DNA of 64,000 nt from NCBI RefSeq assembly GCF_000143415.4, contig NW_003314267.1:62001-126000 (forward strand), in the 5' to 3' direction. Made by a program: the position numbers and the translations under genes. Below the pieces are notes generated by a model. That model did not search any database. It was not told the DNA's origin and worked only from the letters and a program-made list of their open reading frames with translations. The DNA is from Selaginella moellendorffii. Lineage: Eukaryota; Plantae; Lycopodiophyta. Shown piece by piece: positions 14,063 through 63,492 of the stretch. How positions within the stretch are numbered: position 1 is the stretch's first letter; the number at the start of each line of letters is the position of its first letter.

Positions 14063-14148
14063 TTCCTGATTTTAGGGCTTTGACAGTGGAATAGCTCTTT
14101 AGACCCTTACTATAAATAACATTGGGACCAAGAACCCTAAAATCTGGC

Positions 14149-29532: not shown

Positions 29533-31291
29533 TTAACACTGGAAACATTTTGCAAACCATCCAAATTTTTCCACCTTGTGCATTAGATTGTGCATGCTTG
29601 CCCAGGAACCAAAGCCTATGCCTATGATTCCAACCCAAATAACCAATCCAAGGTTGATGCAATAAACACCCACCCAACTCTTGATCCAAAATGGTGGTTG
29701 CTCTACCGCATTCTGAAATCAAATTTTTTGATATGGACAGAAAAGTGTGGCTTGTACCTCTCTTGATTCTTTGTGCTGCCTTATTACCATGAAAGCAAGG
29801 CATGGGAGAATATATATGCCAATGCTGGAGAGCGTAGCACCCACCACTGAGTTGATAGAACCAAAGAATGGAAGCATAATAGCAAGAAAACAAATGCCCA
29901 ACACAATTGGCATCCTGGCTACACACTTTAAGGTGTAGTTTTGGGAGCAGTGGATGCCTAGTAATTTCTCCCACATTGCAAATACTGGAACCACAAGTGC
30001 AGCAAACTCAATGAACTGCAAGAAAATAAAAGATTAAATGTTAAGATTATCATTGAGATTTTAAGTCCACCTGATGGGTAAGCATAAGGATGATAGCTAC
30101 ATTTTTGAACTTGGATGGGGAAAACACTGCTAGGGCATTTGGATGATCGAGCATTTGATCACCAAATCTCCAATACACACTCACTGCAGATGGGAGTGTA
30201 AGTGTGAAGGTATAAAGGATTGCATACACATTGGTTGTCTTGTATTTTCTTGGTGTATCCATAGCTTCAGCAATCTCTCTGAAAGCTGAAACTTAATAGC
30301 ACTGAAGTAGATCATATTGAACTTACAGTGTCAAAGCATGGTTACCAAATGTAAATAGAATATTTGTAGCACCTGAAAAATATTGAATTGTACTTACTGG
30401 AGCTGAATGTTGCACATGCTTATCATGCTGTGAAAGTTATTAAATTTAAAATATTGATAAAGCTAAGACATACCTTTTCAAAAAATATCGATGCAATAGT
30501 GAAATACCAAGCTGTATAAGTTGTCATGAATATGCCAAAAAACACCCAAAGTCTATAATTCCGTGCTGTGGGAATAAGTACAGTGAGAAAACAAAGAGCT
30601 CCAAATATAAAGGTCCAAGTCCTTTTGTCAAGGCTATTATTCATGTACCAGATTGTGCTGTCCACTAGAATTTTAGTGATTTTTGTTTTCTATATGTAAC
30701 TTACTTTGCGCAAGCTATGAGTTGAATTGTTGCAGTGCTCACCAGCAATGCACAATTGAATAGCAATCCAGGTGCTCTCCACCATCGACCCAAAAGACCA
30801 TTTAATACTTCATACCACTATCATCAAGTTTTGTATTTTTTTTCAGGCGACATCAGAAGTTTAGAGTTTCGTTACCTGAATTATGTGACTCTTCCTACGA
30901 GTGTTGTGCCTTTCAAGAATTTTCACATAATCCATATACAGGCACATAGTTATATAACAGCTCCAACAACCAAGAGCACCGTATAGAAGTTGAAATATTA
31001 TTCCAGATGTAATTCCCATTTGTGCAATAGTGTGTGGAAGAGTGAGGAGAACTTGTGCTACCTGCACAAGGGTAAATGAGTATTTCTCCATAGATTTTGA
31101 ATATAATTCTAGAGAAGTTTTACCTGTGCTGTGGTTGTAGTGAGCCAAGCGTCAAATGAAGAACCTCCTACAAGGAAAGCTCCAATTTTCTTTTGGATGC
31201 TTCTTGCAGCTGTGAAATTGTTACTCTCTTCAACATTCGTAATTTGCATTCCAATGCCTACCCTAGACTCGTCCTTGCAGAAGGATTCCAT
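29533..31291 (-). CDS. Divergent AUX1/LAX-family permease, copy 1 (8 exons)
   Basis: GGSSFDAW..QVAQVLLTLP, HIIQWYEVL, LDKRTWTFIFG, MTTYTAWY, GATNILFTFGNHA, TLTLPSA..VYWRFGD, PFFGSINSVVGA, FAKCFQC*; AUX1-type exon layout. Confidence 0.9.
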
Positions 31292-31574
31292 GATTTGCAA
31301 ACAGAAGAGCAACCTATAGTCAATAAAGACAAATTACAAGTCCTGCGAAAAAGCAAGTCCTTTGGAAATGAAAGTCCTCCCGGGCATTTCCTTAACTTTA
31401 GGGTTTTTCTGTCTGGGCTCCAGACGATTTGCTGTCTAGGATCAATGATCTTCAGTGTTATGATAGCAACGCGGATGCAAGGAAGAGGTTGGAAGTAGAT
31501 CACAGCGCACCATTTCACATGTCGGAAGTCGGTTGGTTTCCTTCTTGGCAAAGGTGGTGGTGGGAGTGTATGCT

Positions 31575-32003: not shown

Positions 32004-32910
32004 GATTTCTGTATTGAGTGAGTCTGGAAAGGAGGTGTAAACAAAGCCAGCTTCTTTGGCGGGCTTGGCAGTGTAGAGAGAGCGACATTGTTTTGTTTTC
32101 TTCGACCAGGCACAGATAGCTCTCTTTCACTTGAAAATGAAAGAAGGGACTTATGTGGAGAGGAGAGTTTTGTGGAAAGTGGAGACTGGTAGCGCATGCT
32201 CGCACTTGCACACGACTACCGGGTGATGCGAATTGACCGTGGCTATATTTTCAAGTTTTCTCTTCCTTCTAGAAAACTTTTCTCACGGTTTCACAGGTGG
32301 AGATCAACCTCCATATGACTCCAGGAATGATCTCTTTGATTCATTGTAAATCCTCCGGCTGAAGCATGGCCACTGACAAACGATCCAGGAAACGTGTCAG
32401 CACGGAAAACCGACCAGATTGCTGGGATTGTCGGCATTGGAACGATTGAGGAGATTGCGATAGGAAAAAACAACTCAAGTTGAGAGAAACTTCAAAACCT
32501 AATATTGATACCACAAGCCTTAAAATTCCACGGGCGACTTTGTGCGAATCACAAGTCAAGACCGAGAAAAACTTTCCCTGTCCAAAGAAAAAAAAAGTCA
32601 AAATCTTTCTCCTTCTTCCTAGATGTTTTCGCTGTTTACCTCATTCGTAGTGATCAAAGCAGCTGCCTTGGGATCATCCTCAACCTGGAAGTGCGAATGA
32701 ATTTGCGCGACTGAGAGAGAGATTGCTTTCGTGATTACCTTGTCAAGCGCCGAATGAATCTCTGCTATAGTGGTCGGATTCAACATGAAATTCACTTCGA
32801 TTCTCATTCTCATGTAATAAAACTGGATGTATACTGCCCATCTCCGCCATCAAATTTGAGAACGTCGGGGGGAACGCCCCGAGCTTCACAAAACTCTCCT
32901 CGCTTATTTC
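32004..32910 (-). pseudogene. Rearranged enoyl-CoA isomerase pseudogene (copy of ~13055-14065)
   Basis: High similarity to ECI exons and introns, but start codon reads ATA, with deletions and shuffled segments. Confidence 0.85.
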
Positions 32911-32997
32911 CTCTGACGATTTTAGGGCTTTGACAGTCAATGTTATTTATAGTAAGGGTCTAAAGAACTATCCCACCAAGAGCCCTAGAATTTGGCG

Positions 32998-34085
32998 ATG
33001 GAGCTCGAGTGGTGCAGCCAGGCGCTGGATGCGCTCAAGACGAAGACGCATGATCAGGCAATCGCAGAATACAGTGAGTGATCTCTTTTGGATTGTGAAT
33101 CGAGCGCTGAATCTCTTGTTCTAGACGATCTCAGGATTATCGAGGCCAAGGAGCTGCTCCAGAACTTAGGGGATCATCCGTATTGTAAGGCAGCGACGCG
33201 GGTAGAGCTTCACGGCGTTCGCGACACCACCGGCTTCGTCAATGCGAATTTCATCCGGCACAAGGCTCTGTTCGGGGGGCCGACGGCGATCTGCGCTGGA
33301 AATCCCGACGCGCCAGATCGTTTCTGGGAGATGATCGTGCAGCAGCGCTGTCGAGCAATCGTCAAACTTACTGCTGTGAGTGTCTTGCTCGATTGCTCGA
33401 GGGAGTATTACTCGAACATTTTTTATTTTTTTGGTTTTGTAGGAATGCTACGCTGATTACTTTCCATCAAGGCCAGGAGAATTCGACAACTTTGGAGATA
33501 TCAGAGTGACGAACAAGAGCTTGCAGCACAGTCGGTTTGGAGTTTCCAAGCGTGTTTTGGAAGTGGAATCCCCCGGCCATGAGGCCTTTGGCATTGAGCA
33601 CTTTCAATACTCGTGGACGGACTTTGGAGTCCCAAGGTTGGTAGAGCCCGTCCTCGAAATTTTCGAGGAGCTCTACAAGCTTCAACCTGGATGCTCGTAT
33701 GTCGTTCACTGCAGGTGCGTGCTTATCTTCTTCCTTTCTTCCTTGTTTATCTTTTTCTCTTTCTTTTCTTGGCCTGTGTTCCTTGGAATCTAAGTCTGTT
33801 TGCTTGCCAGGGCTGGAATCGGTCGTTCGGGAACTTTTATTACCATTGACCATATTTTAAGAAGGATTCTAAGTGGAGACCTGAGTGCCGTGAATGTTGC
33901 TGATGTAGTTCAGTACCTCCGACAGCAGCGAGGTGGATTAGTTGAGACGAACGTAAGCCAAGCCCTTGGGTTTTACTCTTTTTTTCCCTTTTGTCTAAAT
34001 GATATTCTGTTCATTGCAGGAGCAATACTGGTTCTGTTTCAGAGCAATTATCAAGCACCTGGAGTGCTTTCTAGCACAGAAGTAA
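32998..34085 (+). CDS. Classical-fold protein tyrosine phosphatase, atypical motifs; exons 32998-33073, 33125-33375, 33443-33714, 33811-33952, 34020-34085
   Basis: FVNANFI, RFWEMIVQQRCRAIVKLT, HFQYSWTDFGVP, VVHCRAGIGRSGTF (P-loop), LRQQRGGLVETNEQYWFCFRAI; GT-AG introns keep frame. Confidence 0.88.
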
Positions 34086-34159
34086 GCTTTGTGAAAACGA
34101 TTTTGACTGACTTTCTTACGACCAATCGCCTGCTGAAATCACATGAGGACGCCATAGCC

Positions 34160-36799
34160 ATGGCTCTTCTGGATGAGCCTCAAACTTGTCGCTCTCACTC
34201 GAATCGAGAAGAGGGGGGAATTGAAAGGTCTAGAGGGAGACAGAAGAAATTGCCGACAAATATCCCGCTGCTACTCAACACCTTGAAGGCATGCACGAGC
34301 ACAAAAGACCTAGAACGGGGCAGAAGAATCCACTCCGAGGCAAGGAAAGCAGGGGCCGACACCAACATATTCGTGGCCAGCAAGCTGGTGAAAATGTATG
34401 CCAAGTGCGGCAGCACGGCAGACGCCCGTACGGCTTTCGACAAAGTCCACCACCCCGACGTCGTCCTCTGGAATGTTCTCATCCTGGGACATGCTGACAA
34501 TGGCGAAGGCGACGTGGCTCTGGATTTGCTTCAGCAAATGCAAGCCTCGGGCTGTGAGCCAAACTCGAGAACATTTGTCGCTGCCGTGAAGGCCTGCTCG
34601 AACTTGGCTGCGAACGAAGAAGCAACACAAGTTGGCAGCAGCAACAGGATGGTGAAAGTCAGGGCCTTGAAGAGAGGGACGAAAGTTCATGCACGGGCTG
34701 CAAGCGGGGGATTTGACACCGACATCTTCGTCGCCAACACGCTCCTTGACATGTACTCCAAGTGCGGGAACATGGTGGAAGCGAGGAAGATCTTCGATGG
34801 AATGGCCTTCCGCGATGCTGTTTCGTGGAACTGCCTCATATCCGGGTACGCCGAGCACCGAGAAGACCTCGAGGAAGCACTGCAGCTGTTTGTGACGATG
34901 GTCACCTCCTCCGACTGCGAGTGTGACCATCGAAGTTTCGTCGCTGCATTGAAGGCCTGTGCTGGGATTGCAGCCGCGAGTAGAGAGGAAGCGACCAAGA
35001 TCTCAGTAAACGACATGGAGCTGGCCAGGAAAAACAGCTTTCTTGCTCTCGAGAGAGGCATGGCGATTCATGCTCGAGCGTGTCTTCACGGCTGGGACTC
35101 CAACATCTTTGTGGCCAACACTCTCGTCGACCTGTGCGTGAAGTGTGGAAGAATGGTGGAAGCTCACGGTGTCTTCAACCGCATGGAGCAGCACGACGTG
35201 GTCTCCTGGAACATTTTATTGCTGGGATATGCCGAGTCGAAGTCCGTGAGCTCCAGCTATGAAGTTCTTCGTCTCTTCTCGGCCATGCAAGCGGAGGCAC
35301 GTTGTCAACCAGACGCTCGGACCTTCGTGGCGCTGCTCAAGGCCTGTTCTACTTTAGCCAGTGAAGAACAAGGCGCCAGGCATGGAGCGTCAAAACAGGC
35401 AGCTCTGGACAAGGGAATGGCTATTCACTCTCAAGTCATCAAGCACAAGTGCGAGTCGGACAGCTTCGTTTGTAGTTCGCTGGTGGAAATGTACTCCAAG
35501 TGCGGCTGCATGGATCCTGCATACAGTGTTTTTGACGGCGTGAAGCAGCAGCAGCGCGGTCTAGTGCTCTGGAACACGCTGATACTGGGATACGCAGAGA
35601 ACGGACAAGCCGAACAAGCTCTCCACCTTTTCGAACGGATGACCACAGAGCAGGAAATATCTCCAGACTCCCGGACGTTCGTTGCTGCTCTCAAGGCTTG
35701 CACGGGCTTGGTGGCGGCAGCGAGTGAAAGCAGCGGCGAGGCACTCAACACTCGAGCCGACGCGAAGAAGCTGGCTGGACTGGAGAGGTGCATGGCTCTC
35801 CACGCTGCCGCTGCCAAGACTGGATTCGACAAGGACCTGTTCGTGAGCAGCAGCCTGGTGGACTTATACGGCAAGTGCGGCAGCATGAGCGACGCTCGGA
35901 GGGTCTTCGACGGCATGCCGGTTCACAGCTCAGTGTCATGGAACTCGCTCATCCTCGGCTACACGGACAACGGCCAGGAGAGAGCCGCGTACGAGGTCTT
36001 CGTGAGGATGATCGACTCGCAGGAGGCCGGGTATGGCTCCAGGCCCGACTGCCGGACTCTGGTAGCGGTTCTCAAAGCTTGCGGCAACGCGGCGGACTTG
36101 CAAGCCGGGAAGGCCGTCCACGCGAGCGCTTGTAAGGCCGGACTCGACTCGGAGGCTCTCGTCGCAACAGGACTGGTGGATTTCTACGGCAAGTGTGGCA
36201 GCATGGACGCTGCTCGTCGCGTCTTCGACTCGGTCGAGGCGAGAGGCACGGACTCGGTGGCATGGACGGCGCTCATAGCAGGGTATAGCCGCGAGGGAGA
36301 GACGAAGCTGGCGCTGGAGCTCTTCCGGGAGATGGCCTCTTCCAGCTCTCGCCTTCCAGACGGTGTCACCTTTCTCGCCATCCTGAGCGCTTGCGGCCGG
36401 GCTGGGCTGGTGGACGCTGGGAGAGAGATCTTCCAGGGAATGGTAGCGGCGAGTTGTAGCTCCGGCGAGGTGGTGGCCAGGATTGAGCACTACCACTGCA
36501 TGGTTGATCTTCTGGGACGCGCGAACGAGCTTGAGGAGGCGATGCTCGTCGCGGAAACCATGCCTTTCGAGGCCGGCGTGGAGACTTGGACGAGCTTGCT
36601 GGCCGCGTGTTGCAAGTGGAAGAATGTGGAGCTTGCAGTGCTCGCGTTTGAGAGGGTGCTGGCTTTGGATCGAGGGCTGGCGGCGCCGTATGTGCTCATG
36701 GCGAGCTTGTACGAGAGCTTGGGCTTGTGGGAGGATCAATCCAGGATGCTTTTGGCTATGGAAGAGAAAAGGCAAGCTAATGGTTTTTCTTCACGTTAA
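34160..36799 (+). CDS. PLS-class PPR protein with E domain, no DYW; L motifs carry long insertions
   Basis: Repeating P-L-S triplets (DAVSWNCLISGYAE / RSFVAALKAC / NIFVANTLVDL..KCG); E region HYHCMVDLLGRA..MPFEAGVETWTSLLAAC..YVLMASLY. Confidence 0.92.
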   Translation: MALLDEPQTCRSHSNREEGGIERSRGRQKKLPTNIPLLLNTLKACTSTKDLERGRRIHSEARKAGADTNIFVASKLVKMYAKCGSTADARTAFDKVHHPDVVLWNVLILGHADNGEGDVALDLLQQMQASGCEPNSRTFVAAVKACSNLAANEEATQVGSSNRMVKVRALKRGTKVHARAASGGFDTDIFVANTLLDMYSKCGNMVEARKIFDGMAFRDAVSWNCLISGYAEHREDLEEALQLFVTMVTSSDCECDHRSFVAALKACAGIAAASREEATKISVNDMELARKNSFLALERGMAIHARACLHGWDSNIFVANTLVDLCVKCGRMVEAHGVFNRMEQHDVVSWNILLLGYAESKSVSSSYEVLRLFSAMQAEARCQPDARTFVALLKACSTLASEEQGARHGASKQAALDKGMAIHSQVIKHKCESDSFVCSSLVEMYSKCGCMDPAYSVFDGVKQQQRGLVLWNTLILGYAENGQAEQALHLFERMTTEQEISPDSRTFVAALKACTGLVAAASESSGEALNTRADAKKLAGLERCMALHAAAAKTGFDKDLFVSSSLVDLYGKCGSMSDARRVFDGMPVHSSVSWNSLILGYTDNGQERAAYEVFVRMIDSQEAGYGSRPDCRTLVAVLKACGNAADLQAGKAVHASACKAGLDSEALVATGLVDFYGKCGSMDAARRVFDSVEARGTDSVAWTALIAGYSREGETKLALELFREMASSSSRLPDGVTFLAILSACGRAGLVDAGREIFQGMVAASCSSGEVVARIEHYHCMVDLLGRANELEEAMLVAETMPFEAGVETWTSLLAACCKWKNVELAVLAFERVLALDRGLAAPYVLMASLYESLGLWEDQSRMLLAMEEKRQANGFSSR

Positions 36800-36814
36800 T
36801 GGCAAGTTATTGAG

Positions 36815-38343
36815 TTAACATTGGAAACATTTGGCAAACAATTTAAATTTTTGCACCTTGTGCATTAGATTGTGCATGCTTGCCCAGGAACCAAAGCCTA
36901 TGCCTATGATTCCAACCAATCCAAGGTTGATGCAGTAAACACCCACCCAGCTCCTGATCCAAAAGGGTGGCTACTCTATTTGAAATGAAAATGTTATGAT
37001 ATGGAAGATACTTGAAAGAAAAATGTGCCTACCTCTCTTGATTCTTTGTGCCAGTCTTGTGACCATGAAAGCAAGGCAAACACCAATTGCTGGAGATGAT
37101 TGCGCCCACCACTGAGTTGATGGAACCACAGAATGAGCTAGAAAACAAATGGCCAACACAATTGGCATTCTGGACACACATTTTAAGATGTAGTTTTGGG
37201 AGCAATGGATGCCTAGTAATGTCTCCATCCTGGAACCACAAATGCAGCAAACACAATGAACTGAAAAAAGAAAGCAAAATAGATTATCATTAAGTTTTAA
37301 GTCCACCTGATGGGAAAGAACATTTGATCACCAAATCTCCACTTACTGCAGATGGGAGTGTAAGTGTGAAGATATGGATTGCATAGACATAGATTGTCTT
37401 GTCCTTTCTTGGTTTATCCATAGCTTCAACAATTTCTCTGCAGGTGTCGAGGAAGAAACAAACTTAAAGTATTTTTCTTATAATGTTAAAGCATGATTAC
37501 CAAATGCATAGATAATAGTGCTGAGTGTTGTACATTCTGTGTTTCTAAACTCAAAATAGCAATGAACTTAGGCGTACCTTTTCAAAGAATATAGATGCAA
37601 TAGTCAAATACCAAGCTCTATAGCTTGTCATAAACATTCCGGAAAACACCCGAAGTCTTTAATTCTGTGCTGTTGGAATAAGTATTGTTGAAAAACAAAG
37701 AGCCCCAAATACATATGTCCTATTTATGTACCAGATGATGCTGTTCAAGTTCAAGATCAAAATTATAGGAAAGGTTTTTCTTCTGGATTACCTGCTTCCC
37801 ACATACGAGTTGAATTGTTGAGGTGCTCACCATCAAGGCACAGTTGAATAACAAGCCAGCTGCTCTCCACCACCGTCCTAAAACTTCATACCACTCAGCA
37901 AATTTATCATATTTTAAAGCTATCGAAATAATTTCTTTCTTGCTTTTCTACTTGAATAATGTGATTTTTCCTACGAGAATTGTGTCTTTCAAGAATTTGC
38001 ACATAGTCCATGTACAAGCACATAGTTATATAGCAGCTCCAGCATCCAAACGCACCATAAAAAAAGTTTAAATATTATTCCAGATGTTTGTGCCAGAGTG
38101 TGTGAAAATCTGCACACAATTTGTAAGGGATAAATCCTTCTTTCGATAAATTTTGGACGAGGAGAAGGAGAAACGTTTGGATTAATGATTCTTTCTAAAA
38201 TTTGAAAAATTTGTAGCGAGAGCTGCCTGCAGTGCCATGCATCAAATGAAGAACCTCCTTCAAAGTGAACTCTGGTAATTTGCTCATGGATGCTACTTGT
38301 AGTTGTTCTTACATTATACTCGTCCTTGCAAAAGGATTTCATG
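36815..38343 (-). pseudogene. AUX1/LAX-like pseudogene, copy 2
   Basis: Collinear with copies 1 and 3, with multiple small deletions and frameshifts. Confidence 0.85.
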
Positions 38344-39629
38344 ACCACACAGCAGAAGCACCCTAAAGATTTTGTCAAGTTCAAGGCTCGTAAGGGACAG
38401 AAGTCATTCAAAAAGCCAAGTCTTTCGGAGATGAAAATGATTGAGTGTAACTTTTGCCTTTGGTCCAAGGCAAAGTATCGCAGTAGCTTCTCCGAATTTA
38501 ACTGAAGTGGGCTCTGATGAAAATTTCCTTCATTTTTTTAGAAAATATATTCTTGAAAGTAAGAGGTGTATAATCCTTCATTTTACCAAGGGATATTTTC
38601 AGTGTGAAATTAATATAATTTGTATAAATCTTAGTAACTGGATTAACAAAATTTCAAGTGGTTGACTGTATAATAAGTGAAGTTCAACTAATCCAATCAC
38701 TTAATAATAATTTTTATATATGATTGTTCAAAAAATATTAATATTAATTATTATTTAATTATAAAATAATAATAAAAATAGAACTTAGTGTGGTTCAACA
38801 TATGTTTATAATACATCAAATAAAGTTTATACTGTATAATCAGTCACTAGAATCATAAATAATTGATCTAAATCACATTCAATTCTTCTATAGATTCATT
38901 GACCTTTGGATCTTCTACCACAATTATATTTTTATACCAATTCGTTGTTATGTGCTCACTTTTAAAATTAAACTCAATATAAGCTTGATCTTATGGCATT
39001 TTAATGCATTAGTAATATATTATTTGAAGCCATTTGAGCAAATGTAAAATTGTTATTTATAAACTAAGTACTAGTTCAAAGTGATATTGTTGTATTGTAA
39101 TTTTTACAATTCCACTTTTAACCATTTTTATAACTTCAATTATCATATCCATATATCATTGATTGATAGCATCTTTTACATTCTATTTTTTCTAGAAGAA
39201 TATCAACCATTATACAAAATAAAATAAAATAAAATATCTTACTATTAAATTCTCTCAATAAAACTAGAGAAAAAAAATTACTATCTTAAGCATGATCTAT
39301 ATATTCCAATCTACTAAAGAAAATGAAGAAATAGAATGTAATAAGGAACATAGATATTGGTTAATTACAAAATTATAGTTGCTAATATACCTATTAACAA
39401 TATTTACTAATTAAAATTTATTATTACTAATTTAGAGTTAGTCATTTTGTCATTTAGCTTGGCAACAAGGCAGTTAAAAAATTAGTGGTCCAACAAGAAT
39501 TATAAAAATTAATGAAAGTAAATACAATATAATTATGGTAAAAAAGTATAAGGTCAAGAAATCAAGGGATTGAATGTGATTTATATCAAATGTTTATGGT
39601 TTTGATAGCCAATTGTTCTACACAAACTT

Positions 39630-39633
<4 letters not shown>

Positions 39634-39708
<75 letters not shown>

Positions 39709-39732
39709 GTGTGTGTGTGTGTGTGTGTGTGT
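39634..39732. repeat. Compound (TA)n(TG)n microsatellite
   Basis: Direct observation. Confidence 0.97.
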
Positions 39733-40339
39733 AATATTCATCTTCATGGCAAAGTAACCTCCTCCTCCTCTTTTAGAGTGAAAATTGGTGCAATTGCTTG
39801 ATACTATATAGTTATAGTTGAACAATTAAACTCAATTAATGTATGTAACTTTTACTTTTGCTATCAATCATTGTGTCTAACCAAATTTCTTCTATATAAC
39901 TTTTAGTGATATATACCATTATTCTAATCACTTTATGGTGATTTCCACTTATCATTTTTAGGATGATATCTAGTATCTGTGTGAGTTTCTTATATATCTT
40001 TAAAGAATAATGTTGTAGTGGTATAATCATTTATGTCAAGATTGGAGTCTTTTTCTATATGTCTTCAAGTACACATTTATACATTTTGATGATAATTACA
40101 TCATTTTTGTCAAGGTTATTTAAGTTAGTTATATAATTTAGTGTTTTCTTCCAAAGCCTTTTACTTTCACTTTTACAAGCACATTCTCCAAAAAGGCTAG
40201 AGGGTGAACACAATTTGCCTTTGACTCCACTTATCACAGCTACACAAGTTAAAAAATAAGTTGGGAAAGGTATTATATTTTTTGCAATAAAGATTAAACC
40301 ACTAATAAAGGAAAGTCTATTGTTTCTAATATCTTTTCT

Positions 40340-40808: not shown

Positions 40809-41792
40809 TGTCAAGACCCCCAACAAAATCAAGACTGGAAAATGCAAAGGACAAAGAGAAAAGCTAGTGGAAACAAAAAAAATGCCTTAGACTGGTGTTA
40901 ATTCAGATTGTGGAGAAATGGAACAAAGCTAACCTATATATACTATAGGTTGATGAAGCTCCACCACTCTTGGATCGAGGACGGCCTAAATATAGCTAAG
41001 GTCGAGGAGGCTCCACATCATCATCAGGAATGTGGCTCAAGACTCAGGAATCGTACAGGAAATCAGAGAGTCAGGAATAGGGAAGAGTCTCGAGAGTCAG
41101 GAATAGGGAAGTGTCTCGAAAATCAAGAATGTGGTCTGCAGGTCAGGAATCCAGCGAGATTCAGGAATGTGGTATAAATTGGGGGATTCCTGACAGCACC
41201 CCATCCTCAAGAACGAGTGGAACAAGGACATGAATGAGAACGAAGAGGAGGATGAGATGGGCGACGAGGGATGGGAGATGGAAAAAAAGAATGAGGACTA
41301 GGACGAGAAGGATAGCGGCGGTGGAAGTCTTGAACAAGGTCAGAAGAATGAATCAAGTTGTCCACAGGTTCCCAAGTGCGTTTTTTAGGTCCATAACCCT
41401 TCCAGTCGACTAGATAATAGAGTTTAGACCGTGAGATCTTGGAATCAAGGATGTCCTGAACCTCGTCCTCAGACCCATCCTCAAGCTGCACTGGTGGAGG
41501 CAGAGGAATGACCCGATTTGGAATAAGACTGGGAATATAAAACTCAAGGAAAAAGGAGTGAAAAACGGGGTGAATTTGATAGAAGGAGGGAAGTGCAAGG
41601 CGATAAGTAACAGGATTAATGATAGCAGTGATAGGGAAAGGACCGAGGCATTTGAAATCGAGTTTGGGACATGGCCTGGTGGTGGAAATATTTCGCCTGA
41701 AGAGCCAGACTTTATCCCCAATATTGTAAGGGGGACAATTCTGACGATGGGCATTGGCAAATGTTTTGTGAGATTCCTGAGCACGATGGAGG
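40809..41792 (-). mobile_element. Third, truncated copy of the chromovirus (LTR 40809-41195 + chromodomain/integrase end)
   Basis: Same LTR sequence; EVQDILDSKISRSKLYYLVDWKGYGPKKRTWEP. Confidence 0.9.
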
Positions 41793-42147
41793 TTCAGAGG
41801 TTGTTCATTCTCGATTGTTGCCACTGCAGGCATATGCTAGCCCAGCCTCAACATGTGAGGACACTCTAGGGGAAGGCGCATGGGCAACTAAGGGGCGGTG
41901 GATGTACAAAGAGCCGAGCTCCACAATCCACAACAATAGGCATTTGCTGTAAGTTTGCTATTCCATGTCCACTTGGAATGCATTCTAGTGTTTCTCTTGA
42001 CATTGTAGTGGAGGCCTAGAGCTTATCCTATGATTTGGTGTAAGAAAATAGGGGCAAATGTCTACAGTTTATATAGTGCTAGCAAATGTCTTTGTGCTTT
42101 GGCTTTTGAGTGCCCTCCCCCTCACCCCTTCCCTTGGGTGCTGGGAG

Positions 42148-42852
42148 CTAGGGTCTTCCACCAGATGCCAGTTCACAGCTCAGTGTCATGGAACTCTCTC
42201 ATCCTCGGCTACATGGACAACGGCCAGGAGACAGCTGCCTACAAGGTCTTCGTAAGGATGATCAAGTTGCAGTATGGCTCCAGGCCCGACTGCCAGACTC
42301 TAGTAGCAGTTCTCAAAGCTTGCGACAATGTGGCAGACTTGCAAGCCGGGAAGGCCGTCCACACTAGCACTTGCAAGGCCGGGCTCGACTCGGAGGCTCT
42401 CGTCTCGTCGCAACAGATTTCCATGTCAAGTGTGGCAGCATGGGCACTGCTCGTCGTGTCTTAAACTCGGCAGAGGAGAGAGCCATGGACTCGTGACAAG
42501 GACTCGGTGGCATGGACGGCACTCATAGTAGGGTATTGAAGATGTAAGCTGGCGCTGGAGCTCTCGCCATCTCGAGCTTGTGGCCGGGCTGGACTGAGAG
42601 ATCTTCCAGGGAATGGCAGCGGTAAGTTCTAGGTTGAGCACTACCACTGCATGGTTGATCGCGCAAACCAGCTAGAGGAGGCGGTGCTATCTGCCGAAGC
42701 CATGCCTTTCAAGGCCAGTATTGAGAATTGGACGTGCTTGTTCGCCACGTGTTGCAAGTGGAAGAATGTGCAGTGCTTGCATTTAAGAGAATGATGGCTT
42801 TGGATCTAGGGCCGGCATTCTCTTTTACCAGAGCTTGGGCCTGTGGGAGGAT
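42148..42852 (+). pseudogene. Decayed 3' fragment of the PPR gene at 34160 (copy of ~35895-36735)
   Basis: RVFHQMPVHSSVSWNSLILGYMDNGQE..YGSRPDCQTLVAVLKAC matches the intact gene, followed by frameshifts. Confidence 0.88.
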
Positions 42853-42910
42853 ATCCATCGATGGCAAAAGGTATTGTATAGTAAGTTTTTCACACTAATG
42901 AGTTAAGTTC

Positions 42911-44680
42911 TTAACACTGGAAACATTTTGCAAACAGTCCAAATTTTTCCACTTTGTGCATTATATTGTGCATGCTTGCCCAGGAACCGAAGCCTGCGCC
43001 TATGATTCCAACCCAAAGAACCAATCCAAGATTGATGCAGTAAACACCCACCCAGCTCTTGATCCAAAAGGGTGGCTGCTCTATGGCATTCTGAAATAAA
43101 AATGTTGTGATATGGAAAATAGTTGAAAGAAAAATAGTGGTGGCCTATACCTCTCTTGATTCTTTGTGCCTCCTTATGACCATGAAAGCAAGGCAGGGGA
43201 GAATGTAGACACCAATGCTGGAGATGATAGCGCCCACCACTGAGTTGATGGAACCAAAGAATGGGAGCATAATAGCTAGAAAACAAATGCCCAACACAAT
43301 TGGCATTCTAGCTATACATTTTAAGGTGTAGTTTTGGGAGCAGTGGATGCCTAGTAATTTCTCCCACATTGCAAATACTGGAACCACAAATGCAGAAAAC
43401 TCAATAAACTGCAGAAAAAATTAAAGATTAAACGTTGAGATTATCATTGAGATTTTAAGTCTACCTGATGGGTAAGCATAAGGATGATAGCTACATTTCT
43501 GAACTTGGATGGGGAGAGCACTGCTAGGGCATTTGGATAATTCAGCATCTGATCACCAAATCTCCAATACACACTCACTGCTGATGGGAGTGTAAGTGTG
43601 AAGATATAAAGGATTGCATACACATTAGTTATCTTATACTTCCTTGGTTTATCCATAGCTTCAACAATTTCTCTGAAAGCTGAAGTTAATAGCAGTAAAG
43701 CAGATCATATTTTAACTTACAGTGTCAAAGCGTGATTACCAAATGTATAAATATTATTTGTAGCACCTGTAAAATACTGGATTTTACTTACTGGAGCTGA
43801 GTGTTGCACATGCTTATCATGCTGTGAAAGTTACTAAATTTAAAATATTGATAAAGCTAGGACATACCTTTTCAAAAAATATAGATGCAATAGTGAAATA
43901 CCAAGCTGTATAGGTTGTCATGAATATGCCAATAAACACCCAAAGTCTATAATTCCTTGCTGTGGGAATAAGTACAGTGAGAAAACAAAGAGCTCCAAAT
44001 ATAAAGGTCCAAGTCCTTTTGTCAAGGCTATTATTCATGTACCAGATTGTGCTGTCCACCAAAATTTTAGAGATTTTGTTTTCTATATGTAACTTACTTT
44101 GCACAAGCTATAAGTTGAATTGTTGCACTGCTCACCATCAATGCACAATTGAATAACAATCCAGATGCTCTCCACCATCGACCCAAATGACCATCTAATA
44201 CTTCATACCACTATCATCAATTTTTTATTTTATTTTCAGGCGACACCAGAAGAAGATTTTAGTTTTGTTACCTGAATGATGTGATTCTTCCTACGAGCGT
44301 TGTGCCTTTCAAGAATTGCCACATAATCCATATACAGGCACATAGTTATATAGCAGCTCCAACAACCAAGAGCACCATATAGAAGTTGAAATACTATTCC
44401 GGATGTAATTCCCATTTGTGCAAGAGTGTGTGGAAGAGTGAGGAGAACTTGTGCTACCTGCAAGGTAAATTTCTCCATAGATTTCGAATATAACTCTAGA
44501 GAAGGCTACCTGTGCTGTGGTTGTAGTAAGCCATGCATCAAATGAAGAACCTCCTACAAGGAAAGCTCCAGTAATTTTCTCTTGGATGCTTCTTCCAGCT
44601 GTGAAATTGTTACTCTCTTCGACATTTGTAATTTGCATTTCAATACCTACTGTAGACTCATCCTTGCAGAAGGATTCCAT
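42911..44680 (-). CDS. Divergent AUX1/LAX-family permease, copy 3
   Basis: Same exon set as copy 1, closely similar (MESFCKDES..; FGNHA; FAKCFQC*). Confidence 0.9.
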
Positions 44681-45623: not shown

Positions 45624-46329
45624 ATGGAGTTTGTGGATGAATCTGAAGAGGAGTTCGAGGGGTTCTGGGAGGAGGACTGGCCAGAGTTCCATCGGGGAAG
45701 ACGAGGAGGCGGGGTTCGGCGAGGAGGAGAGCAACCTCGCGGTGGCAAGCAGCAGCACATTGGAAGATGGATTCGTGTCGATTGGATCGAAACGGCTGAT
45801 CATCACATCCTCCAGATCGATCTGCCTGGTGAGGGAGTTCTTTCTTTCCTCTCTTAAAACCTTGAGGAATGCAGGATCCTCCGGGATCCTCTAAATATTT
45901 CAAAAGTGAATCTGTTGTGAACCAGGTGTGAAGAAAGATCGACTCCATTTGAAGGTCGAAGGCAACAGGATGCTGGTGATCTGTGGGGAGAAGCACAGGG
46001 ACAAGCCTGATAAGGAGAAAGGCGAGAAGGCGAGATTCTATGAGCGATTCGGAGGCGAGTTTTCAAGATCCTTTCGGATGCCCAAGGATGCAAAGATAGA
46101 CGAGATTACGGCCACCATGGAAGATGGTGTACTCACTGTCACAATCGCCAAGATCAAATCTGCTGAACAGAAGCCCGATGTGAAGAACATCAACATCCAG
46201 TTTGCTCAGCAGGCTGGTGGAACTCATTTGCCAGGTCAAGGTTTAAACTCTACTTATAAACTGTAATTTTATTGAATTTAGATGCAGGTACTCAGCAGCA
46301 GCAATCTGCTGCTACAGCTGCCACTTAAG
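45624..46329 (+). CDS. Small heat-shock protein (HSP20/alpha-crystallin domain); exons 45624-45828, 45926-46234, probable 46282-46329 (alternative stop 46266)
   Basis: RVDWIETADHHILQIDLPGVKK..ERFGGEFSRSFRMPKDAKIDEITATMEDGVLTVTIAK. Confidence 0.88.
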
Positions 46330-49737: not shown

Positions 49738-51106
49738 TGCCTCAAAGAGGTTTAGGGCTGAAAAGAATATCCTTGAAGGCTCCTCACCGCTGATGGTTTG
49801 TTCCAATCCAACGGCTCATCTGCAACCATGAAAGCTTACTAATAATTAAAACGAAGGGGAAAAATGGGTTTGTTGTTTTGGCGGCAAATGGGCTGAAGAA
49901 GGCATCGGCAAGGAGCCAAGGCGGGGTTGTGAATAAGGCTCCATCACAGTGATTGGGTTAACGAGACGCTTGGGGCAAGGTGTGTATTTGTGCTCTAATT
50001 GCCTAAGAGAGAAGGTGGGGCAGGAAATCTGGATTTTTGCAGCTTCTCAGGAATTCTGGATTGGAAGACTATGAGTCGGGCAACGATTGTAGAAGCCTTC
50101 TAGAAGAGGAGCCGCAAGTGCCTCGAATGTGGATAACTGTAGCCACCAGACCAGAAAGGTCTTTTTCCCAATTCCAGAAGCGGCTGAGCTTCTCTCTTTT
50201 GGTTGTTGTTTTCCAGGTTTTTCATTCAGGGACGGTTCAAACGAGCAGAGAAATTACGGATGTGTGCGAGTGAGAGCGAGTGGTAGTCTCGACTGCTACC
50301 AAGATGGAGAGGTCAGATTGTAAAACTCTGTTCTTCACAACTCTTTGATTGTATTGATAGATTGCAAGGAAAAACCCGCTCTGTAGCCATAGCGCCATGG
50401 CTGTTGCGGGCTTCAAGCCTTGAGCAATACAAGTTAATTTTCTTGTAGAGGTGCCCTTAGTTCACAACGCAGTGTTTTGCAAATCCACTAATCTAATGCA
50501 GCAGTAGAGGTTACAGCTGCAAAGAGGGTGGCGATGGATCTGTTGGACACGCTCTAGCCGCGCATGGCAGGTTTCTTTCATTGAGTTTTGTATTCATGCC
50601 CGCATTTTAGGAGTGTCACATATGAACTGAAATCAGCTTGAAGCAAACAACATCCACTAAGTTTCACAGCATTTGATTGCATCGAATATTGCTTAGTCCT
50701 GAGAACAAGACACAGCTGGTGGCTAAAAGCAAAATAAGGTCTGTCCACAGTGACAATCAACTTGTGGCAAAGTGAGTTATATTAGCTGTAGTAGTGGGCA
50801 AGAGAAAAGTGAACGACTCAACACCTTTTGCAACAATTTCCTTACTACAAGAGCTCATCGGTGAGAAGCTGTGGAGAACAAGGGATTGTGGGCTCTAGGA
50901 GGTAGAAATAAGTATCTAGTGGAGTTAATGGACGAGATAAAGCAAATGATGGTTGATTAAGTACATCTCACTTTTCTTAATTGAGTTGAACTAGTCAGTG
51001 GTCACACTTGAACTAGTCTAGTTTGCATTTGTTTATGAGCTAATTTTACGTAGGCTGCATTTTATGCATCGGAAATTTATAATAGTATATATTTTATAGA
51101 TTTGAA

Positions 51107-57545: not shown

Positions 57546-57622
57546 CCGTTGATGGTAGGAAACCAGTCCTGGCCGTCCAATTCCAACGGTCATAACCTAA
57601 ATTTTGAAGTCCTAAACCCTGC

Positions 57623-59520
57623 ATGAAAGAGTTGAGCCGGGGGGAATGCGTAGATCTCATATCCTCGTGCACGACACTTCCGGATGCCAAGATCATCCAC
57701 GCGCGAGTGGCGTGCAGCCCGCGCATGATCGATTCGGGCCTCTTCCTCTCCAATCTCCTCATCCAGATGTATGGCCGGTGTGGCAGCACCGCCCACGCCC
57801 GCCGCGTCTTCGACGCCCTGGACGTGAAGAACGTCTTCTCCTACAATCTCTTGCTCACCGCCTACGCCCGCAACGACCAGATCGACGACGCCATCGCCCT
57901 CTTCGATCGCATCCCCGACAAGAACCTGGCCTCCTGGAACGCGATGCTCGCCTCCTACGCACGGATCGGCCGGATCGGCGACGCGCAGAGGATCTTCGAC
58001 GCGATGCCGGCCAGGAACACGATCTCCTGGACGGCGATGCTGTCCGCCTACGCGCAGATCGGCGAGACACGCCTCGCCGCTGCGATCTTCCGCGCGATGC
58101 CGGATCCGAGCCTCGTTTCCTGGAGCGCTATGCTGGTTGCGTGCGTTGACGCCGGGGATTTGGAGGGCGCGATGGCGCTGTTCCTGGCGATGCCGCTGCG
58201 CGATCTGGTGGCGTGGACGACGCTTCTGGTGGGATTTGCCGATAACGGGCATCTGGACAGCGCCAAGCGCGCGTTTGATTCCATGCCGGAGTGGAACATG
58301 GTAGCGTCGACCGCGATGATTGTCATCTTCTCTCAGAAGGGATCCTCGAAGAAGCGATTTCTATCTTTCGATCGATGCTCTACAGGGATCTAGTCGCGCT
58401 GACAGCGATGATTGTAGCATTTGCTCAGAACGGGCATTTGCTACAAGCTCAGAAAATCTTCGACACTATGCCAGATCGAAGCATCGTTTCCTGGACGGCG
58501 ATGTTGGCATGCTACTCACAGCTGGGGAGGATCAACCAAGCTAAAGAGATCTTTGAAGAGATGCCAGAGAGGAATCGCGTGGCTTGGAACACCATGCTTG
58601 CGGCAAACGCCCAGGAAGGGGATGTAGAGAGTGTGGAGCTCCTTCTCTCGCGAATGCCCGAGTGGGATCTAGTCTCCTGGACAGCGCTGGTCGTGGCGCT
58701 AGCGCACAGAGGCGAGCTTGATCACGCCAGGATCGTTTCCAAGCGCGTGAGCGACCTCGATCTCCGCCTCTCCAACGCGATCATGGCAGCAAGCGCGCTC
58801 GATCACAGCAAGCGCGTCTTCCAATCGATGCTCTACCGTGACATCTCGTCCTGGAACTCGATGCTGAGCGCCTACGCGCGCTCGGGCCGCATCGACGAGG
58901 CGCGCTGGATCTTCGATTCCATGCCGCAGCACGACGTCGTCTCGTGGAACGCGCTCCTCGCAGCGTACGCCCAGGCTGGTGATCTCGATCACGCCGCGAA
59001 GATCTTCTCGTGGGCGATGCCGGAGAGAGATCTCGTCTCCTGGACAGCGATGGCCGCCGCCTATGCCCACGCCGGCTTCCCCGACCGCGCGTCCGCGATC
59101 TTCGACGCCATGCCGGAGAGGAATCGCGTCTCGTGGGGCGTGGCGCTGGCGGCACAAGCCCAACGCGGCGCCGCCCGCAAGGCGGTGGAGATCTTCCAGA
59201 GGATGCAAGCCGAGGGGATTGGGGCGGACGAGATCTCCTTCGATTGTTTGCTGCTGGGATCCAGCCACGCCGGGAGATTGCGCGAGGGCTGCCACTACTT
59301 TCGATCCATGGGTTTGGATTTTGGGATGGCCCCCAGCAAGCAGCATTTCCAGTGCGTGGTGAGCTTGCTGGGGCGGGGCGGCCACGCGGACGAGGCGCGG
59401 AGCTTGGTCTCGGCCATGCCGTACGTCCCCGACATTGTGGACTGCCGGTCGCTGCTGTCGGCGACCGGGGGACAGGGACTTTGCGTTGACGCTTGGAAGT
59501 TGGCCAGGACCCAACATTGA
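57623..59520 (+). pseudogene. S-motif-rich PLS PPR gene with a 1-nt frameshift near 58340 and a truncated E domain (pseudogene or assembly error)
   Basis: PPR repeats run in one frame to IFSQKG and continue in the next frame as ILEEAISIFRSM; ends HFQCVVSLLGRGG..MPYVPDIVDCRSLLSA. Confidence 0.85.
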
Positions 59521-61754
59521 CCAAGAAGAAACCCTCTCCAACTAAGTAGAGAGGGAACATACTCTTCCAAGATGTTTGGAATCAAAGACACTTCTTCACT
59601 GAGAGTAATTCGACATTTTCTTGCCTGAATTGAGAAGATAATCTACATTTCTTGGTGTCAACAGATTTCTTCACACTAAGCATTTCTTCTTTATAACCTA
59701 ATGCAAAGATCCTGTTACTTATTGATGTGAACCAGAATAGTCGACAGATTTTTTGTAAGCAAAATTGACAGATCCAAGTAAGCAGAGACCTATGTGCAAA
59801 ATGCTTCGCCCTGGACAGCACAAGAACGAGCTTAGCAAAAAAAAGAAAAAAGGGAAAAAAAAAGGAACAATCAAGAAAATATCTTACGTTTGAACCTATC
59901 GCTGGAACTTGCGTCACTAGTGGTTCCCAAGGCTCATGATCAGATTACATCAAATCTAGCCATAAGTAATAATGTACTATAAATAAATGTCTTCTTCATA
60001 TTGCCTTGCTTTGTTCATTTTGTTTCATATCTAACTTTGAAAGGAACTTTGTTCTCTGTAGGATAGAGTACTATTCAGCAAGGCATCAAGAACGGTGGCA
60101 GCTGATATGTGGATACTCTTCTCCCAAGGAGGAAGAGTAATGGACTGTAAGATGATCTTTCAATGATTTCAGTAGTGTAATGCAAAATGCCTTCAGCCCT
60201 CTAGCAATTCTAAGAGTATACTAGGAGGCACAGATTGATTATAGGGTGGAGTGAGGATGTAAGTTATTGGTGTGCTTTTTTGGCTTACTTTTGGATTGTT
60301 CCATCTTAGTCCGAAGGCTGAGGATGTTAATAAGGAGCCAGATGGGCTACAAGGCCAGGGCATATCGTCATGGACAGGGGAGCCAAGCTGAATCCATTGT
60401 TAGCTTACTTGCTTGAGGAGCAGACTATGGCACTACTCAACTGTGCAAGGGAGTTGGTGATTGAGTGCAAAAGGTAGAAGTCTTTAGAAAGAAACCTGTA
60501 TTTTCTGGGCAATTTCTACAAAACAAATGAAGAGAAAAAATTGATAGAAATTTATGGATTATAGCATATAATTATTTAAGTCTTAGAGAGTTCATTTGGC
60601 AATGGTTTTTCTTTTACAGCAACTAGTTGTTTTGGATCTAGTTGAGTAAGATAGTTTATTCTTGATTGGTATCCTAATAAAGGCAGAACAATAGTGACCA
60701 AAATGGTGGATGATTTAGTTCATCAATAGAGTCTAGCAAAATTTCTACTAACTTTAATTCATTGGGAACGTGTTAATCCAGGTAAACCCAAGTGGTGCTT
60801 AATTTGCCTCTTGTAGCCTCTGATTTGGACTACAAGAAGCAAATGCCAAAGTAGATTCAAGCTGAAGCATTGGAAGAGTTTCATAAGCACAAAACAACTA
60901 TATTTTTGCAAGCTAAGATTAGGCATCACTCTCATTGCAGTCACGTCACACGCTCACACTTGCAATCTAATATCGCGTGGAAGCATCGTCGATCGTTGCA
61001 GGAATGAGAGTGGAGCACGTGCCAGGGACTTCCTGGTCCATCTCTTCAAGTGTGGATCTCGAGGACGAGCCTGTCATTTTCATGGTGACGATAATGATGG
61101 AGTTCTAACAATGCTGACCCAAAAACAACAAGCTTGATTCTTCGGCTTGACCCTGGGCACAAACTGGCAACATATTTGATGGATTTGCAGATCGAGCACC
61201 GAGTCGTGGTTTGCCGAGACGCGAGTCGATTCCATGTTTTCAAGGATGGAGTGTGTTGATTTTGGAGCTTGGAGGTAAGCATCGTTTCTTTTCTTACGGA
61301 CTTTTCTCACGGCTTGGATTTGAACAGAGCTTTTACGATTCGTCACAACGGTAAAAGTCCTCCAAGTGAAAATTACGATTTTTCTACTAGAGACATCATA
61401 AAAATTCGTGATCAAGCACATGGAACTGGCGAAAAAGAGATGGATTTTTTTTCTTACCATGCACGAGCAATAGTCCAAATCAGAATAAATGTTTAGAATT
61501 TAACATTTAAATAGAAACCAAAATTGTTTTTTATCTTATTAATTCATGTTCTTTTATTTTTAAAATATCATATAATCTAAATGAATTTAATCATAAGTGG
61601 CTTTAGAAACATCTTTATGCCTTCTTTGTGTCAGGTGATAAGTGTTCTAATCTACCACTTTCTAGAAGGTTGTTTTTTCATAGAATATGATTATCACTAA
61701 CCCTTTTTTATTAAGCAAAAAATTCCAAAATATTATAATTTTAAAGTTAATATT

Positions 61755-63492
61755 TTAAAGTTTATTACATTCAAAGCATTTAGAAAACAATCCAAAGCGC
61801 TCAACTTTGTGAAATAGACTATACATGCTTGCCCATGCACCAAAACCCATACCTACAATTGCCACCCATAGCACAATCCCAAGATTAATGCAGTAAACTC
61901 CCACCCAACTATTAAAAATCCAAATTGGAGGTTGTTCTATAGCATTCTGAAATTTCTTTAGTAGTTAACTTATTTGCTTATAAAAATTGTTTTAATTACC
62001 TCTCTTGATTCTTCATGTTGTCTAATAACCATAAATGCAACACATGGAAGAATATAAACTGCTATACTGGAGAGGAAAGATCCCACAACTGAGTTTATCG
62101 ATCCAAAAAATGGTAGCATAAGTGCAAATAAACATATTATAAGCACAATGGGTATCCTTGCAAAATATTTTATAGTTTGGTTATTGGAGTGATGAATGCC
62201 TAGCATCTTTTCCCACATTGCAAAAACAGGAACTATAAATGCTGCAAACTCAATTATCTGCACAATAAAAGTTTGTGAATTACAATGTAAACTTAAGAAA
62301 TAAACCTTTTGACCTGATGAGCTAGCATGAGAATTACTGCTATAGTCTTAAATTTAGATGGAGAAAAAACGGCAAGAGCATTTGGATGTTCAAGCATTTT
62401 ATCTCCAAACCTCCAATATACACTTATTGCAGATGGTAATGTAAGTGTGAGAATATAGAGAATGGCATAGACATAAACAAACTTGAATTTTCTTGGCTGG
62501 TCCATAGCTTCTATTATCTCCCTTCATTGAAAGTATAGGCCTTTGTAAGGAAATATGATTTTGTTGATACTTACAGGGTTAGAGCATGACTGCCAAATGT
62601 GTAAATAATATTTGTAGTTCCTGTGAAGTACTCAACTGAGCTTGTTGGGCCTGTATGTACAGCATTCTGATGCTGCAAAGCAAACATTATATATTCCAGA
62701 GTTTAATTTTCAGAATCTCCTACCTTTTCAAAAAATAGTGCAGCAATTGTCATGTACCAAGCAGTGTAACTTGTCATAAAAACACCTAAGAACATCCAAA
62801 GGTGATAATTGCGAGCCATTCGAATGAATAATGTAGAGAAACATATAGCTCCAAAAATATATGTCCAAGTCCTTTTATCAAGGTTGTCATTTATGTACCA
62901 TACAGTGCTGTAGTCCAATTTTAAGAATTATACAAGATCCTTATTAAAATACTCACTTCCCACAAGCTACCAACTGAATTGTTGCAGCACTCAACATCAG
63001 CATGCAGTTGAATAGCAAACCAAGTGCTTTCCACCATCGACCCAAAAGGGCTTCCAAAACTTCATACCACTGCCACCAAAGCATTTGTTCATAGAAGATC
63101 TTATGAGAAATTCATTCCTTTTCAGACCTGAATAATATGATTTTCTTTTCGTAATTTTTGCGAGTCTAATATCCAAATATAATCAGCATACAGGGATGTA
63201 GTCATATAGCAGCTCCAACATCCAAGAGCGCCATATAAAAGCTGAAATACCACTCCTGATGCCAGCCCCATTTGAGCAAAAGAGTGTGGGAGCGTAAGAA
63301 GAACTTGCGCTACCTACAAGAGTGAAGAAAAATTCCAAATCTACAAAGTAAAATGTGCTGTAGAGAAGCATTTACTTGCACAGTAGTGGCTGTGAGCCAT
63401 GCATCAAACGCGGAGCCTCGCCGGAGGAAAACTCTACTAATCTGATCTTCCATTGCACTAGTTCTAGTGCTTCTATTTCCAAAGGATTCCAT
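61755..63492 (-). CDS. Divergent AUX1/LAX-family permease, copy 4 (older paralog)
   Basis: RGSAFDAWLTATTVQVAQVLLTLPHSFAQMG, INDNLDKRTWTYIFGA, YTFGSHA, PFFGSINSVVGS, FSKCFECNKL*. Confidence 0.9.

Follow-up and report, generated by a model that had tools for sequence, protein, structure and literature searches.

Four AUX/LAX-like loci on one strand

The stretch analysed here, 64,000 nucleotides of the Selaginella moellendorffii contig NW_003314267.1 (positions 62,001 to 126,000; hereafter the window), carries a tandem cluster of genes related to the auxin importers AUX1 and LAX3. Gene models were built from reading frames and splice signals, and loci were identified across the whole window. A tblastn search with the model of copy 1 recovered exactly four AUX1/LAX-like loci within the window, and no fifth; they lie between 29.5 and 63.5 kb and share the minus strand. 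Copies 1, 3 and 4 are intact, with eight coding exons each and introns of 45-62 nt that all follow the GT-AG rule (21/21); position 29533 is the last base of the copy 1 stop codon and 63492 is the A of the copy 4 ATG (Table 1). The exon-5 acceptor of copy 4 (62672) was set by read evidence, and that of copies 1 and 3 is the homologous CAG acceptor, as in the NCBI model. Copy 2 is a pseudogene with frameshifts in exons 2, 6 and 7, in-frame deletions in exons 3, 4 and 8, deletions also in exons 5 and 6, a stop codon in frame at the NY(R) site of exon 4, and a degraded motif in the first transmembrane helix (TM1); its nucleotide identity to copies 1 and 3 is 69-78%. An earlier inspection of the letters alone (hereafter the sequence-only reading) had described three intact copies and one pseudogene, all on the minus strand, and both the gene models and the tblastn search confirm this arrangement.

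The annotated copy 3 protein (P0148, SELMODRAFT_84463) equals our model but starts at Met15, and the copy 4 model is 99% identical to P0149 (SELMODRAFT_104259), encoded on the scaffold of the other haplotype. P0002 (SELMODRAFT_415922) is the other haplotype's copy 3, and a separate annotated protein for copy 1 was not found among the search matches.

Table 1. Position, strand, exon structure and basis of identification of the features of the cluster and of the elements lying between its copies.
Feature	Position in window	Strand	Exons	Basis
Copy 1, intact AUX/LAX-like gene, 465 aa	29533..31291	-	31291-31124, 31061-30876, 30817-30705, 30657-30474, 30427-30327, 30278-30071, 30015-29758, 29712-29533	Pfam Aa_trans and AUX1/LAX3 chain matches
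Copy 2, pseudogene of the AUX/LAX-like family	about 36818-38342	-		Three-frame read
Copy 3, intact gene, 466 aa, annotated SELMODRAFT_84463	42911..44680	-	44680-44510, 44457-44272, 44210-44098, 44051-43868, 43821-43721, 43672-43465, 43408-43151, 43090-42911	Gene model
Copy 4, intact older paralogue, 451 aa; allele SELMODRAFT_104259	61755..63492	-	63492-63376, 63313-63128, 63069-62957, 62907-62724, 62672-62575, 62521-62314, 62257-62000, 61946-61755	Gene model and spliced contig
PPR gene abutting copy 2, part of the older PPR + carrier duplication unit	33800..36799	+		Pfam PPR repeats, E motif
PPR fragment beside copy 3, remnant of the PPR + carrier unit	42030..42870	+		Pfam PPR in open reading frame 42030-42464; within-window match to the 3' end of the PPR gene at 33800-36799
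Ty3/gypsy-type retrotransposon fragment between copies 2 and 3	40809..41833	-		Pfam SH3_Tf2-1 (integrase SH3), Chromo

Judged by profile, structure and exon matches, the window genes are of the AUX/LAX type specifically, that is, members of the AUX/LAX family, broadly defined. In copies 1, 3 and 4, exon 7 scored 42-46 bits against the Pfam family Aa_trans (PF01490; cut-off 25.6), and the remaining exons gave weaker, partial Aa_trans matches in the correct profile order. The only solved structures in the Protein Data Bank (PDB) that the exons matched were those of AUX1 and LAX3, exons 2, 3, 5 and 7 aligning without gaps to AUX1 residues 60-121, 122-158, 224-252 and 322-406. The copy 3 protein P0148 aligned to the AUX1 chain 9jdr_A over residues 39-467 with a single one-residue gap (E = 9e-153), so that a relationship to AUX/LAX is far beyond chance; this alignment fixed the AUX1 residue numbering used below. 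Arabidopsis AUX1 (9jdr and related entries) and LAX3 (9h61-9h63, 9qqm) share about 50% identity with the window proteins and align with them end to end. Other AAAP permeases belong to the same Pfam family that matches the window exons; however, whereas the window genes match the AUX1 and LAX3 structures, no solved AAAP amino-acid carrier was matched at E < 1 in a PDB search with the copy 3 protein.

The same genome also holds canonical LAX genes (SELMODRAFT_112710; "auxin transporter-like protein 2", P0279), and SELMODRAFT_112710 has eight coding exons of 186, 186, 113, 184, 98, 208, 258 and 201 nt. Those of copy 4 measure 117, 186, 113, 184, 98, 208, 258 and 192 nt; its six internal exon lengths equal those of the canonical gene, and intron positions and phases are therefore identical. 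The internal exons of copies 1 and 3 match as well, save exon 5, which is 101 rather than 98 nt long. The "AUX1 exon layout" that the copies had been credited with beforehand is thus borne out. In contrast to the window copies, the canonical Selaginella genes have longer introns (65-309 nt, versus 45-62 nt), retain the invariant AUX/LAX pocket, and group with AUX/LAX proteins of ferns, seed plants and bryophytes.

The substrate pocket and its lycophyte relatives

The AUX1 and LAX3 structures of 2025 named the residues that hold indole-3-acetic acid (IAA), which were reported as invariant in all AUX/LAX (PMC12337342, PMC12364708). The IAA carboxylate is bound in AUX1 by Tyr244, Gln62 and Gln153 and the indole N-H by Asn58 and Thr325, while the ring touches Ala61, His249 and Ala329; His249 and Gln59 are termed invariant (PMC12337342). 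For LAX3, whose numbering is that of AUX1 minus 2, the carboxylate is bound by Gln60, Tyr242 and His247, and the ring pocket consists of Phe143, Leu144, Val249, Phe326, Ala327 and Pro330, while Asn56 forms a hydrogen bond with the ring; apart from His247 and His319, no residue close to the site can be protonated, and transport is lost in the mutants Y242F, F326A and A327F (PMC12364708).

Copies 1, 3 and 4 all keep Gln59, Ala61, Gln62, Gln153, His249, Glu254, His321 and Pro332, both proton-site histidines (His249 and His321) among them, as well as the C-terminal Cys pair of AUX1 and LAX3. Two further residues are kept in part: copies 3 and 4 have Tyr244, where copy 1 has Phe, and copies 1 and 3 have Arg194, where copy 4 has His. 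In contrast, Asn58 is replaced by Ala (copies 1 and 3) or Val (copy 4), Phe145 by Leu, Phe148 by Ser, Gly149 by Thr, Ser or Ala, His191 by Arg, Gly248 by Asn or Ser, Val251 by Leu, Thr325 by Glu, Gly327 by Ala or Ser, Phe328 by Ala, Ala329 by Leu or Phe, and Thr331 by Val, with Glu325 as a new acidic pocket residue. The motifs concerned read WLTTTTAQVAQ (copies 1 and 3) or WLTATTVQVAQ (copy 4) in TM1; LLVSTATIQ, LMVSSATIQ and LMLSAATIQ (copies 1, 3 and 4) in TM3; FGNHA (copies 1 and 3) or FGSHA (copy 4) in TM6; and HQFIEFAAL, HQFIEFSAF and HQIIEFAAF (copies 1, 3 and 4) in TM8.

All the motif changes quoted in the sequence-only reading are present in the window copies, and the canonical AUX1/LAX sequences that it used for comparison are correct, matching the solved Arabidopsis AUX1 and LAX3 chains without gaps. 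Its statement that the TM6 histidine is retained holds for His249 in copies 1, 3 and 4, and its placing of the changes in the pocket agrees with the structures, where the positions are those of the IAA-ring contacts N58, T325 and A329 of AUX1 and F143, F326 and A327 of LAX3. Asn58, Thr325, Phe328, Ala329, Phe145 and Val251 are each 99-100% conserved in 135 canonical proteins, and the window copies lack this canonical ring-binding set (the first four, together with Phe145 and Val251). As read from the alignment, the proton and carboxylate half of the pocket is kept and the ring half is rebuilt, a sharper pattern than the sequence-only reading had stated.

Searches with P0002 and SELMODRAFT_78094 found relatives closer than the canonical proteins only in S. 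moellendorffii and Diphasiastrum complanatum (Lycopodiaceae), and an exhaustive search of representative sequences with copy 1 exon 7 gave only two clusters above 49% identity, both of them copy 3 models. Among about 178 family members that were fetched, Glu325 was confined to these two species, and the full canonical pattern at 11 scored sites is found in 139 proteins, from liverworts to angiosperms. The clade marked by T325E, loss of N58 and replacement of F328 and A329 takes in eight D. complanatum proteins and, besides the window copies, five further annotated S. moellendorffii proteins. Counted over the proteins sampled, it has at least six loci versus two canonical proteins in S. moellendorffii, and eight proteins versus three in D. 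complanatum.

The sequence-only reading had called the copies a lineage-specific subfamily and proposed a phylogeny with land-plant AUX/LAX as a check. We ran a maximum likelihood analysis on 36 sequences and 469 columns with the LG+F+G4 model and 1000 ultrafast bootstraps (supports are given as SH-aLRT/UFBoot). The divergent proteins formed a separate, lycophyte-only clade (98.4/95), and the window copies fell beside, not inside, the canonical land-plant clade (95.4/95), which comprised bryophyte, fern and seed-plant proteins together with the canonical lycophyte ones; the outgroups of this tree are representative sequences without names, and its root is provisional. The window copies grouped with SELMODRAFT_100516 (100/100), and a quick posterior mean site frequency (PMSF) tree agreed with the LG+F+G4 tree. 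Approximately unbiased (AU) tests on fixed trees marginally rejected a single clade of all lycophyte sequences (p = 0.045) and did not reject a nesting of the divergent clade in the vascular plants (p = 0.061). The subfamily is thus distinct, as had been claimed, but it is not specific to Selaginella, since D. complanatum members make it lycophyte-wide. Because T325E, the loss of N58 and the replacement of F328 and A329 are common to both lycophyte orders, the clade, dated by these shared residues, predates the split of the two orders and is at least as old as the separation of Selaginella from the Lycopodiaceae.

The other members of the clade (SELMODRAFT_100516, 133400 and 78094; D. complanatum O6H91_03G078100, 11G098800, 19G025300, 20G016100 and others) have likewise lost Asn58, carry Glu325 (all but two), have Cys or Ser for Phe148 and replacements of both Phe328 and Ala329, and keep the same His, Gln and Tyr residues. 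F148S, F328A, G248N/S, V251L and H191R are confined to the Selaginella subclade to which the window copies belong, and these changes (Ser and not Cys at 148, Ala and not Leu at 328), together with G327A/S, set the window copies apart from the other members. On a wider scale, 224 sites are at least 97% conserved in the 135 canonical proteins; 121 of them are kept in at least 12 of the 13 clade members and at 21 others the whole clade departs from the canonical residue. Roughly half of these 21 fall on TM1, TM3, TM7 and TM8 (F53, N58, F148, G149, V151, T273, V276, T325, F328, A329, T331 and L333), where numbers past TM1 were anchored on motifs and the reference LAX1 carries one extra residue. 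By alignment and tree placement, then, the window genes encode AUX/LAX-like carriers that depart from two canonical features, the invariant ring-binding residues and membership of the canonical clade.

One protein of the representative library (P0130, 449 aa) is a very divergent clade member, with an end branch 4.5 long; His249 and Gln62 are both missing from it, and 16 residues are inserted ahead of TM8.

Public records list the proteins of the cluster and of the clade as "hypothetical" or as amino-acid transporter domain proteins, and no description of a lycophyte AUX/LAX-like clade was found in the literature searched, the coverage of which was partial. Clade genes are routinely annotated as amino-acid or auxin transporters, which bears on counts of auxin-transport genes in early vascular plants. 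The clade offers a natural counter-example to the invariance of the pocket: the predicted fold, the intron positions and the proton and carboxylate sites are the same, and the ring-binding half is conserved yet different, with a new acidic residue, under purifying selection and in two lycophyte orders.

Constraint, expression and predicted substrate

The proteins of copies 1 and 3 are 91% identical, with 0.041 nonsynonymous (dN) and 0.21 synonymous (dS) substitutions per site and a dN/dS of 0.19 by the Nei-Gojobori method (NG86); at the nucleotide level they share 89.6% identity across 1.9 kb, introns included. Both are 70% identical to copy 4, with dN/dS ratios of 0.125 and 0.10 (NG86) in comparisons where dS is saturated, NG86 estimates of dS above 1.5 being unreliable. 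That the shared changes suggest selection had been part of the sequence-only reading, and it is upheld by these ratios of 0.10-0.19, which are not near 1: the window copies form a distinct subfamily under purifying selection.

Since the duplication that separated copies 1 and 3, 15 changes can be assigned to copy 1 and 11 to copy 3. Those of copy 1 include Y244F, a Thr to Ser change in the invariant FTGATN motif and a Leu to Trp change in the C-terminal FGLFAKC, the Phe at 244 and the Trp in FGLFAKC being found in copy 1 only; those of copy 3 include a Leu to His change in LDGLLG. Over 8 kb, the other haplotype (GL377594.1, locus L001) shares 96.6% identity with the window. Exon 8 of its copy 3 (SELMODRAFT_415922) lacks 4 bp at window position 42994, and the resulting frameshift leads to an early stop and the loss of the C-terminal 27 residues; elsewhere the allele differs at 16 sites, of which six change an amino acid (allelic dN/dS 0.21). 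On these comparisons, the duplication behind copies 1 and 3 is recent and has left the two partly redundant, and copy 4 is a paralogue of long standing, in a family that is constrained overall.

RNA reads were examined at 61000-64000 only (3001 letters), the region of copy 4. In run X1, a Logan contig (1780 nt, depth 21) lacks all seven copy 4 introns, with junctions exactly as modelled; the copy 4 locus is transcribed and correctly spliced.

Two other transcribed segments were seen in this region. A strongly expressed minus-strand gene at 63626-64000 has its 3' end about 150 bp upstream of the copy 4 ATG; its intron at 63842-63890 is supported by 30-43 reads per run, and no Pfam family matched an open reading frame within it (63694-63924). 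In the X1 contig this gene and copy 4 are joined, which may reflect read-through or an assembly join. Weak transcription (depth up to 2 in runs X17 and X18), with reads oriented opposite to the neighbouring genes, was found at 61101-61504, where a loose end at 61190 is suggestive of splicing or of the end of a transcript.

Taken together, we consider it probable, at roughly 0.6, that the window holds a tandem cluster of a lycophyte-only branch of AUX1/LAX whose products are proton-coupled importers with a changed substrate preference. They would be plasma-membrane proteins with the 11-helix core of the LeuT fold, working as AUX1 and LAX do. The retained histidines His249 and His321 would carry the proton, and the retained Gln62, Gln153 and, in copies 3 and 4, Tyr244, with Gln59 and Ala61, would hold a carboxylate. 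Since the carboxylate and proton residues are retained, the substrate is probably still an organic acid. What would have changed is the fit of the remainder of the molecule: the acceptors of the indole N-H appear lost or altered (N58 to Ala or Val, T325 to Glu), and the aromatic and small residues predicted to fit its shape are swapped (F145L, F148S, G149T/S/A, V251L, F328A, A329L/F and T331V). Glu325 is predicted to lie one helical turn (i+4) from His321 on TM8, as a third protonatable group in a pocket where LAX3 has two histidines only, and may either bind a substrate group that is cationic or donates hydrogen bonds, or else influence the coupling to protons. The substrate could plausibly be a compound other than IAA, such as a carboxylate that bears an amine or some further hydrogen-bond donor, or an aromatic or aliphatic acid of another shape; a change in proton coupling is likewise possible. 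A more specific proposal, that in this old, expanded lycophyte sister family the TM8 glutamate beside the proton-site histidine turns an auxin carrier into the carrier of a different metabolite (an amine-bearing or other non-auxin carboxylate), is tentative and falls somewhat short of even odds. If true, the clade would be a natural experiment on which residues make AUX/LAX auxin-specific, and it could reveal a new plant transport activity.

Several observations weigh against a changed substrate, or against a present role for the whole cluster. About half of all residues differ from the canonical proteins, so that a 50% change at the named pocket residues is no excess; the case for a new substrate therefore rests on the pattern of kept versus replaced residues and on conservation within the clade. 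Glu325 could itself accept the indole N-H bond, which would be compatible with IAA binding. Copy 1 carries Y244F, and the equivalent Y242F abolishes LAX3 transport (PMC12364708). With copy 3 frameshifted in the other haplotype and copy 2 dead, part of the cluster is dispensable. As for expression, the spliced contig carries variants of the other haplotype (e.g. T9S at 63468, as in P0149), so the locus is transcribed but the allele seen is the other one. Three raw RNA-seq runs (X17-X19, about 9.2 million reads each) gave zero reads on the coding exons of copy 4; as the neighbouring gene reached a depth of 20-40 in the same runs, copy 4 expression must be low or restricted.

The alternative that survives best is that the proteins are still auxin importers, in which Glu325 would replace Asn58 and Thr325 as the acceptor of the indole N-H and the other changes would tune affinity or favour phenylacetic acid or indole-3-butyric acid. 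It would account for the retention of the entire carboxylate and proton apparatus, and it can draw on the tolerance of ring recognition in LAX3, which also carries 2,4-dichlorophenoxyacetic acid (2,4-D), whose ring does not use Asn56 (PMC12364708), and on the algal outgroup proteins, which likewise lack N58 and T325. Nevertheless, F326A and A327F each abolish LAX3 transport (PMC12364708), and both positions are changed here, along with F145, F148, G149 and V251. Moreover, the genome retains fully canonical LAX genes (SELMODRAFT_112710 and P0279), and a second, larger set with an altered pocket is therefore more readily accounted for if its role is different. We regard continued auxin import as unlikely, and a changed substrate preference as the better account of the replaced ring contacts.

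A second alternative, to which we attach little weight, is that the cluster is redundant and decaying, its recent duplicates drifting to loss and its pocket changes being without present function. The pseudogene copy 2, the frameshifted copy 3 of the other haplotype, the Y244F, FTGATN (Thr to Ser) and FGLFAKC (Leu to Trp) changes of copy 1 and the lack of copy 4 reads in three RNA runs would all be expected from such decay. However, a dN/dS of 0.10-0.19 between copies over a dS of 0.2 to more than 1.5, three intact reading frames with all 21 introns canonical, a spliced copy 4 transcript, and the conservation of the key changes across two lycophyte orders speak against decay. Equally improbable is that the main change concerns energy coupling or role, with a His321-Glu325 pair altering proton stoichiometry or pH dependence or with the proteins acting as sensors or facilitators: Glu325 lies i+4 from His321, which stands at the position of the second sodium site of related carriers (PMC12364708), and the M4-M5 gate carries R194H in copy 4 and H191R in copies 1, 3 and 4, but several purely hydrophobic pocket residues have changed along with Glu325, pointing to a change in ligand shape.

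Neighbouring genes and elements

The older duplication unit of the cluster included a pentatricopeptide repeat (PPR) gene: 35900-37318, with the 3' ends of the PPR gene and of the carrier, matches 42150-43476 at 73%. Just upstream of the 999-aa PPR open reading frame, Y_phosphatase exons at 33088-33950 (+) run into it in frame, and the region 32022-33339 is duplicated at 13087-14448 (77% identity, with a small internal inversion). Another PPR gene at 57623-59520 (+) is split into overlapping open reading frames in different frames (57623-58393, 256 aa; 58291-59520, 409 aa) and may be a frameshifted pseudogene or reflect a sequencing error. An HSP20 gene (45928-46266, +) and a phenylalanyl-tRNA synthetase beta-chain gene (47383-49841, -) lie between copies 3 and 4, and the annotation of the other haplotype has the two in the same order. 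These neighbours (PPR, tyrosine phosphatase, HSP20 and phenylalanyl-tRNA synthetase beta chain) were considered as a hint to a metabolic pathway and rejected, as they give no such hint.

Four related retrotransposon pieces, at 17890-19310, 22695-24109, 28086-28421 and 40809-41793 (the last within the fragment of Table 1), share 80-97% identity and carry a Tf2-type integrase SH3 domain and a chromodomain. Alignment of the other haplotype breaks off at window position 41789, within the piece at 40.8-41.8 kb. Between copy 2 and the retrotransposon fragment, a long (TA)n/(TG)n microsatellite occupies positions 39586-39825, inside a stretch with 27% G+C.

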